Assembly (NCBI RefSeq): GCF_003704095.1
Contig: NW_020845264.1
Location: 806,001 to 870,000 of the forward strand
Direction of reading: 5' to 3'
DNA length: 64,000 nucleotides
DNA from: Pocillopora damicornis
Taxonomy: Eukaryota
The notes under the pieces are model-generated. The model was not told the origin of the DNA. It worked only from the letters and a program-made list of their open reading frames with translations, and did no database searches. The position numbers were made by a program, and so were the translations under genes. Below are positions 31,101 through 34,100 of the stretch, piece by piece (position 1 is the first letter of the stretch; each line of letters opens with the position of its first letter).

Positions 31101-34100
31101 TTGAAAGAACAAAACTTGACATTCCAGTTTCCTTTTTTGAGTATTCTTGGTTAGCAGTGGTTTATCTTTGCTAATACACATTGCTCGGTCAAATGGAAAT
31201 GGCGCTGTTATTTTCCTATTAGGCTCTTGTCCTTTGTCCTACAAGAGAATTGGCACAGCAGGTGCAAACTGTGGCCTTCCAGTATGGTCGCAATACCAAT
31301 GTCAAAAGTGTGTGCATCTATGGAGGGGCACCCAAGGGACCCCAAATTCGTGAGCTTGAAAAAGGTGAGGTAGCCATAACAATATATGCACTACTCAAAA
31401 GATTCTGGTGTTAATTCAAATTTTATATTTCAGTAGCTGTGTTCTGAGAAGTATTAAACTACAGAAGTGTCAATCAAAGTTAATTTAATTTAGACTTAAA
31501 ATTGAACTTCTGAATGTAGGACTTAATTGCTGGAAAGTTTGTCCAGAATAAAACTTTCCATTCAGGATGCCTGAATAAACTGAATTTCTTAAATCTCTCT
31601 TTGAAATGTACCAACCTAGTGAATAGTTAAAAGGTGTAAGTGTTTGTAGAGTCCCAGTTAGTGGGTTTTCATTCTTTTGCTGCTATGAACCTTGAGTGCT
31701 ATCATCAATTCTTGTACCTGGGTTTAGGGTTAGCAACTTAGTTCCTGGTAATGATGTGTCCTCATCTTCTATGAGAATTTTTTCTGTTTACTGGAGACAG
31801 GGATGGGAGTCTTTGATTTATGTTACCTCTACTATTCCTGGTTTCAGGGGTGGAGATATGTATTGCCACACCAGGAAGATTGATTGATATGTTGGAAGCT
31901 GGTAAAACAAACTTGCGACGCTGCACATTTTTGGTACTTGATGAAGCAGACAGGATGCTTGACATGGGCTTTGAACCACAGATCAGGACAATTGTTGAAC
32001 AAACAAGACCAGACAGACAGACACTCATGTGGAGTGCTACATGGCCCAAGGAAGTGCAAGGGCTGGCAGCTGATTTCTTGCGGGACTGTGTTAACATCAC
32101 AGTTGGCTCAGTGGGGCTCACTGCTAACCACAAAATCTTACAGATTGTGGATGTTTGTGATGAAACTGAAAAAGACTACAAGTAAGTTGAAAGTTTGTCT
32201 TTGCATAGGAAGTTCTAATTACCTGCAGATAAAAGTTTTTTCTGGAGATGAAGTTTGTTCGTTTGTCTCACAATAGAGTCACTTTAGCAATCTACATCAA
32301 AAGTGACTACATCATGAGACAAACAAACAAAGTTTTTTCTGTCTTGCACATGAACTTTGAAATTTCTTTTTTGCAAATATTGATTTTATTGCTTTTTATC
32401 TGTGTGTAGAACTTAGAGAACAGGCTTTAAGTCATCTTTGCCCCCTATGTTTCTAATGGTATAAAATCAAGAGTAATAGTTGAACCATAATAGCTCAACT
32501 ATAACGTGATTCACTAACACAATTTTTATTATTTTTACAAGGTTGATCAAGCTTTTGGAAGAGATAATGGGAGAGTCTGAAAACAAGGTATTCTTGTCGT
32601 TTATATATAGATTCGTAAAGGTGAAAGAATGTATCTGTGGGTTCTATTTTCCTCTGTTGTATTTCTATTAAATTTGTATGTTTATTGTAGTCACTCATTT
32701 TTACTGAGACAAAGAGAAGAGCAGATGAACTAACAAGAAGGATGCGTAGAGATGGGTATGTCTTGCTTTCTACTTAATACATGTGGAAGGAGGTGTTATC
32801 TGATGGATTGAGCAGCTGATGAATTAAAATTTCATTCCTGAAATTTTCATGTTGACCATTTTGAATTCCTCGTTACTGATGCTCTCTGCTAATGTGTAGT
32901 CTGCTGTGTTTTAGTCTTTCCGGTTATATTTGTTCAATAATTACAATTATCTGTTTACTTCCCTTGATGTAGATGGCCAGCAATGTGCATTCATGGGGAC
33001 AAATCACAGCCTGAAAGAGATTGGGTATTAAATGGTATGTGTGGCTTTAAGCCTTGATTAGGTGAATGAGGTGTGTCCCTGGGAGAGACACTAAACTTTT
33101 CTATTGCCTTCCTCCATTCACTATTGTAAATAGGAACTGGAAAACTTTCAGGGAAACTTGATGGATTGCTGGGGATAGTCTGTGATGAATGTGCCTTCAT
33201 TTAGGAGGGAAGCAACACTCCTGGTTGTTTCATGTTGTGGAACTGTAATTTGTCCTGTGGCTGCTAGGCATAAAGGTTGACTGGACAAAATTTTATTTCT
33301 GAATTAAAGAGCCAGGATAAATGCATTAAGAGTTAAAAGTATCCACATAATTTATTACATAAACCTGTCATGGAACTTAAAATGGAAAGGAATGTTTAGA
33401 AATGTTTGAGATAGGGTTTAACAGCCCTCTCAGGACTAGATAACAAGTTGTGCTAGCCTAAATAGTGTATTTACAAATAAAATGAACCTTTTAGAGTTTG
33501 ACTTCTTTGTCTTTTAAATTTCAGAGTTCAGGAAAGGTAATGCTCCTATTCTGGTTGCTACTGATGTTGCCTCCAGAGGACTAGGTTTGTATATGTTTTT
33601 CTTACTAGTTAACCAGCACAGCAAAAATTTTGGGTTTCTTTTTTTTTACCTATGCTAATTAGCTATCTAATTAGTTTTATTACAGTGATAAAACATTAAT
33701 GAATCTTCTGGAGTGTAGTGGCTTTTGTGTCGGTCTTTTTTTCAACTGTCTTATTTACTAACTCTACATTCTATTTTTTAATCCCAGAGTAGGATTATTC
33801 TTTTTAATCCGAGGGTTCATCATCCTTGCTGTGGTTACTGTTTTCCTTGATTGGAGGGAACTGTGCATGACCTTGGTTTGTCAGCTGAGCTGGAGGGAAA
33901 GGAGCAGTTTCAATAACTCCTTCTTTTTTAAGATGTTTAGCTTGCATAGATACCAGAATTTTCTTTCCATAAAAAGTGTAAAAAATAAATTTTACTTTGC
34001 AATCTTGTGGGCCACTGTCAGAAGCACTTATGCATACAGCTATAAAATATCCTACATCTCAGGAAATTTCTCAAGTTACAGAAACAACTGGCGAAATAGA

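Follow-up and report, generated by a model that had tools for sequence, protein, structure and literature searches.

Does a short block in an intron of a coral helicase gene encode a box C/D snoRNA, and if so, which rRNA nucleotide would it modify? The block is a 75 nt unit at positions 32810–32884, forward strand, of the window, as the whole 64 kb stretch of DNA analyzed here will be called. A first-pass annotation had read it as such a snoRNA, hosted by a DDX5/17 gene and directed at an 18S rRNA site known from yeast. The evidence is best explained if the intron encodes a functional box C/D snoRNA, ~73–75 nt long and very probably a guide for methylation of the 18S equivalent of yeast G1572. 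The kind of RNA is well known; this one is a real, conserved, previously unannotated snoRNA, and its identity as such rests on its anatomy, its position within the intron, the conservation of its functional parts, and one RNA 5′ end. Less certain are its relationship to snR57, the yeast guide for the same site, and the nature of the longer RNA on which that 5′ end was seen.

Structure of the Element

The unit is closed by a 5 bp terminal stem, with the 5′ half GAGCA (32810–32814) pairing with the 3′ half UGCUC (32880–32884), and has C, D′, C′, and D boxes and a 12 nt antisense element beside the D box, all on the forward strand. The C box, cUGAUGA, is at 32816–32822, with UGAUGA itself at 32817–32822. 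It is followed by a 15 nt region 5′ of the D′ box (32823–32837), nominally the D′ guide but probably inactive; by the D′ box, read from the sequence as CUGA (32838–32841); and by the C′ box UGUUGA (32850–32855). After a 7 nt spacer come the D guide GAAUUCCUCGUU (32863–32874), which is antisense to 18S AACGAGGAAUUC, a single spacer nucleotide (32875), and the D box CUGA (32876–32879), which abuts the 3′ half of the stem. The 5 bp stem and a 3 nt bulge (g-c-U), along with the G-A/A-G that the C and D boxes contribute, have the layout of a C/D kink-turn. Every part that the first-pass annotation had described (75 nt unit, kink-turn, D′ and C′ boxes, 12 nt guide) is found where it had been placed, as is the one irregularity it pointed out: UGAUGA and CUGA are exact, but the first position of the C box is C instead of the purine of RUGAUGA.

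Nowhere else in the window are UGAUGA, CUGA, and a 5 bp Watson-Crick stem found in such an arrangement. Since dinucleotide shuffles give a chance expectation of 0.25 per window, the architecture alone is only mildly unusual, and not decisive. It is the rRNA complement in the D-box register, together with uniqueness in the genome and conservation, that puts the element far beyond chance: the guide plus D box occurs once in the genome, and the snoRNA unit is single-copy. The folding energy of the unit is not better than that of shuffled sequences (z = 0.27); among C/D snoRNAs such an uninformative value is common.

Host Gene and Intron

The host intron (32756–32972, forward strand) is 217 nt long with GT..AG ends, and the splice across it (joint 32754/32972, cut +1) is present in RNA contigs from three independent runs. 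It lies between an exon encoding 21 residues (32691–32755) and one encoding 20 (32973–33036), both of which match DDX17/DDX5 and are covered by RNA contigs. In searches of the exons one by one, the best matches of the larger upstream exon among solved structures were human DDX17 (E = 5e-52), yeast Dbp2, and human DDX5. By these similarities the host is a DDX17/DDX5/Dbp2-like gene, in agreement with the initial assignment to a DDX5/17 helicase. Just upstream of the snoRNA intron there is a difference in intron presence: the window exons 32542–32587 and 32691–32755 are fused in one coral-like metagenome contig (L028:4124–4253, reverse strand).

The element is on the sense strand of its host. The distance of ~88 nt to the 3′ splice site in the first-pass annotation proved exact for the end of the unit, with the intron now established from RNA contigs; from the end of the D box to the same site the distance is 93 nt, as against 76–78 nt in six other taxa. 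Vertebrate intronic C/D snoRNAs are found about 70–90 nt upstream of the 3′ splice site; Hirose and Steitz are said to have shown in 2001 that such snoRNAs are processed best ~70–80 nt upstream of it. The coral element also resembles the vertebrate ones in occurring as one snoRNA per intron, in sense orientation.

A second, much longer intron of the same gene (33617–35690) contains ~0.9 kb of blocks 77–90% identical to four other coral-like contigs. These (33751–34083, 34287–34518, 34601–34643, 34761–35027, and 35611–35690) are as conserved as exons; their conservation is non-coding, because they have no codon periodicity and contain indels, and no Rfam match was found in them. Yeast DBP2 and human p68 have a conserved autoregulatory intron, to which this one corresponds in position.

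Conservation in the Orthologous Intron

Metagenome contigs were scanned for the pattern UGAUGA, 25–55 nt, the 12-mer guide, one nucleotide, and CUGA, yielding 76 matches on 65 contigs. Seven of these contigs, representing five coral-like taxa (L015 = L039, L028, L057 = L067, L058, and L060), have the same element, flanked by the same pair of DDX5/17 exons, and it is likewise present in L022, from a more distant taxon (83% protein identity over the large exon, vs. 91–92% for the others). An alignment of this intron of the kind that the first-pass annotation had suggested, made with the coral-like taxa, shows the C and D boxes and the guide conserved in all five; L022 keeps them too.

Conservation is very unevenly distributed along the intron. 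In the alignment of six taxa (the window and the five coral-like ones), all 12 columns of the guide are invariant, as are all 10 of the spacer nucleotide, D box, and 3′ stem half, for an unbroken 22 of 22; the guide is also kept in L022. Eleven of 13 columns are invariant in the 5′ stem half and C box, and five of six, among corals, in the C′ box, whose variant UGUUGA is present in L022 too. The D′ side is much freer: six of 15 columns are invariant in the region 32823–32837, and two of four in the D′ box, which reads UUGA or UUAA in most of the coral orthologs. In the flanking intron 22–23% of columns are invariant (~40% identity, effectively unalignable), compared with 77–82% in the coding exons. 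UGAUGA is the same in all orthologs; the base before it is C in the window and L028, whereas the other corals have A. RNA runs from close relatives show three differences within the unit, two of them in the D′ region (32827 and 32831) and one in a spacer (32857). The conserved block also reaches 5–7 nt beyond the 5′ end of the guide (CCAUUUU); this extension does not obviously pair with 18S.

The stem halves are invariant in the five coral orthologs. In L022 the stem is a different one, GCAGAC/GUCUGC, still complementary, a compensated replacement with boxes and guide retained. Judged from the alignment, this pattern, in which boxes, guide, and stem are kept while the flanks diverge, fits the box C/D class; since the D′ guide is not conserved, there would be one active guide.

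Conservation of an intronic element could have another cause. It might act, for example, as a splicing enhancer or as a binding site for a protein regulating the host gene, with the box motifs a coincidence, and the strongly conserved non-coding blocks in the downstream intron lend this some plausibility. What is conserved, however, follows the grammar of C/D RNAs, with D′ guide and spacers free to vary, and a compensated stem would be hard to account for in this way. A non-snoRNA role is highly improbable on these grounds and on two more given below, the RNA 5′ end and the recurrence of guide and boxes in unrelated hosts.

RNA Evidence

The RNA runs consist of assembled contigs, in which ends and abundance are not in general readable. 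Low-depth contigs cross the unspliced intron in three of them. In one run, X15 (an “RNA-Seq other” library), a contig opens with 22 letters joined directly to position 32812; we read these letters as the 3′ portion of the 5′ adapter of Illumina small-RNA libraries. The junction marks an RNA 5′ end at 32812 on the forward strand, 4 nt upstream of the 7 nt C box. Trimming of human C/D snoRNAs leaves 4–5 nt ahead of the C box (PMC4053766), a distance that the coral junction fits.

Downstream, the same contig retains the remainder of the intron, enters the next exon, and crosses the splice that follows it; none of the X15 contigs covers the upstream exons. Because of this continuation it may not represent the mature snoRNA, and may instead be a 5′-trimmed intermediate protected by the snoRNP, or a longer snoRNP-capped RNA. 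The adapter junction supports snoRNP assembly at this place, without proving a ~73 nt species. That neither a 3′ end nor a discrete RNA of this size was seen, the RNA data being contigs, could be cited in favor of the non-snoRNA reading considered above, but a 5′ end at the snoRNP boundary speaks against it.

By analogy with the mammalian lncRNAs that have snoRNAs at their 5′ ends, the X15 contig could also be a stable transcript in its own right, capped by the snoRNP, derived from the DDX5/17 gene, and spliced at the next intron. We consider this unlikely. If it were so, the transcript would arise when a 5′–3′ exonuclease stalls at the snoRNP, and could be a regulatory by-product of a helicase gene with a long conserved non-coding intron.

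The Guide and Its Predicted Target

The guide is a perfect 12 nt complement of 18S AACGAGGAAUUC, one nucleotide away from the D box; the duplex is just 12 bp long, with mismatches at both bounds. Counting upstream from the D box, the fifth nucleotide is C32871, which lies opposite the G of AAC-G-AGG. As a check on yeast numbering, the first A of the 12-mer lies 70 nt upstream of Cm1639 in the 3′ domain of yeast 18S. In yeast 18S, Gm1572 is directed by snR57 (PMC4344503), and the m7G1575 made by Bud23 corresponds to human m7G1639 (PMC5699541). The predicted target G thus corresponds to yeast G1572 and lies three nucleotides 5′ of the m7G made by Bud23/WBSCR22: guide register and literature agree with what the first-pass annotation had derived from the D+5 rule.

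The annotation had further remarked that the site seemed to be missing from the human map. A review table marking most yeast sites as conserved in human does not have Gm1572 among them (PMC8307265), and a text search of the literature found no paper on human Gm1636; human would differ from the coral in this respect, to judge by the table. For the target position, papers on Drosophila, Arabidopsis, Xenopus, and Dictyostelium, searched in their main text, had nothing, nor had a review. A text search for the antisense 12-mer itself returned mostly 18S primers and unrelated sequences; in papers on diverse protists it is found inside longer sequences, several of which are 18S primers.

Whether the coral 18S has the complement, a possible weak point identified in the first-pass annotation, was examined in the genome assembly (234,350,878 bases, 4393 contigs). 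Searches with SSU and LSU models and with a conserved 18S pattern found truncated or degenerate copies, and no intact 18S gene or rDNA unit. The target 12-mer is present, intact, in three rDNA-derived fragments, all on one contig. The truncated or degenerate 18S and 28S pieces are on contigs C1013, C2415, and C3123 of assembly G000 (L001, L003, L004, L073), with a short tandem arrangement of 18S 3′-domain fragments on C2415. No convincing target for the D′ region was found among these available fragments, the full rRNAs being absent from the assembly.

A path from intron to modified rRNA can be proposed by combining the established pathway for intronic C/D snoRNAs with the features above. The snoRNA would be transcribed as part of the DDX5/17-like pre-mRNA. 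Its terminal stem would bring the C and D boxes together into a kink-turn, which would recruit Snu13/15.5K, Nop58, Nop56, and fibrillarin. Once the intron had been spliced out and debranched, exonucleases would degrade it as far as the resulting particle. The 12 nt upstream of the D box would then pair with AACGAGGAAUUC in the 3′ major domain of 18S, and fibrillarin would methylate the 2′-OH of the G paired with the fifth nucleotide of the guide. The D′ side, with no conserved guide, probably just supports assembly.

A genuine C/D snoRNP need not methylate the nucleotide it faces. It might serve as a folding chaperone for the 18S 3′ major domain, compete with Bud23 or time its access, or guide the modification of some other RNA; the guide duplex would cover the future m7G position, and the conserved CCAUUUU next to the guide has no evident partner in 18S. 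Nevertheless, the D+5 register of the guide falls exactly on a site that yeast is known to methylate. The one-nucleotide spacer, and with it the register, is found in 76 of 76 same-guide matches (the search pattern required it), many of which have independent terminal stems. A role without methylation of the target G therefore seems quite unlikely, and a methylation guide for the G1572 equivalent is the reading followed here.

Relationship to snR57 and Other Known snoRNAs

No Rfam family reaches its gathering score in the window. With permissive settings, in a 301 nt scan, thirteen C/D models align over their full length on 32807–32890. The best-scoring of these, SNORD36 (RF00049), has 26.6 bits, below its cut-off of 30, and was rejected; it is like the coral element in overall C/D layout and length, but the resemblance is generic, and the guide regions do not correspond.

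The search with the snR57 model that the first-pass annotation had recommended came out negative at this locus: snosnR57 (RF00474, cut-off 50 bits) is not listed there even at E-values up to 10 in the 301 nt scan, and the best candidates for RF00474 in the whole genome, all ≤28 bits, are all elsewhere. Other loci with the same guide behave similarly. Rfam gave no family fitting this RNA at gathering score in 20 of them and no hit at permissive E-values in seven more; RF00474 matched none of the 27 tested, and none of them reached an Rfam cut-off.

The description “snR57-like” is therefore apt as regards target and single-guide layout, and not as regards recognition by the Rfam model. The predicted target G is the one that snR57 serves (18S G1572 equivalent; PMC4344503). 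Yeast snR57 has a C′/D′ motif without an active guide beside it (PMC3116282), and the coral element likewise appears to be a single-guide RNA with a C′/D′ motif of this kind. Sequence or covariance-model similarity between the two is not detectable, and their settings differ: fungal snR57, widespread in fungi, belongs to an snR57-snR55-snR61 cluster (PMC3596301), whereas the coral snoRNA is alone in its DDX5/17-like intron. In sum, by sequence comparison the coral element is predicted to work like snR57, but it falls outside the snosnR57 model and differs in genomic setting.

Do the two nevertheless share descent, or is the coral guide an independent one or one diverged beyond recognition? Common ancestry would account for the same target, the same D-side guide, and the inactive C′/D′ guide in both, and it is favored by the wide distribution of snR57 in fungi (PMC3596301) and of snoRNA-like sequences with the same guide in eukaryote-like metagenome contigs. 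The failure of RF00474 to find the coral locus at E-values up to 10, or any of the 27 others, counts against it, as does the contrast between a protein-gene intron and a snoRNA cluster; and outside boxes and guide the two offer nothing to compare, so that descent and convergence are indistinguishable there. Shared descent is a serious possibility, but we lean slightly away from it.

The Same Guide in Other Eukaryote-Like Contigs

Beyond the coral-like contigs, snoRNA-like sequences with this guide are found on about 50 other eukaryote-like metagenome contigs. A terminal stem of at least 4 bp (G-U allowed) is present beside the boxes in ~47 of the 64 distinct matched sequences, and the stem sequences differ from one another; around a dozen of the matches resemble chance hits in GC-rich coding DNA. 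With the coral element these sequences have in common the identical 12 nt guide, one nucleotide from the D box. They differ from it in having other hosts or being clustered, and in their stems and D′ regions. The C′ variant UGUUGA is common to many otherwise unrelated ones.

In eleven contigs (L018, L019, L026, L034, L040, L048, L049, L051, L054, L065, and L068), the same-guide sequence is just upstream of an exon encoding an eIF4G-like eIF4E-binding motif, which would mean a different host gene in another eukaryote. In L065 (1335–1625, reverse strand) and the L018/L019/L026/L040 group, the C/D-like sequence has the stem UGCC/GGCA and the C′ box UGUUGA, and the motif encoded by the exon is KKRYERDFLMELQ. 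Such recurrence of the same guide and C/D boxes in unrelated hosts, the eIF4G case among them, is also difficult to reconcile with a splicing enhancer or other non-snoRNA role specific to the coral gene. Tandem copies with the same guide are found on single contigs in four cases (L017, L066, L070, and L071). In five (L013, L016, L017, L025, and L038), the D′ side has a conserved GUUAUCCCUG that resembles a second rRNA guide and is absent from the coral version.

Implications

A guide for the yeast Gm1572 site is, on this evidence, no fungal peculiarity, and in reef-building corals it is strongly constrained. As guides for it are found in corals and in metagenome contigs, and human maps do not have the site, the methylation is likely to be old and to have been lost in some lineages. 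Because Rfam misses the same-guide snoRNAs entirely, guides for rRNA modification are under-annotated in cnidarians; pattern searches anchored on a guide can recover snoRNAs of the kind that Rfam misses. For coral 18S rRNA the element leads to a specific prediction, a single Gm with the m7G three nucleotides away, and at the level of the predicted guide it extends a “yeast-only” site to animals.
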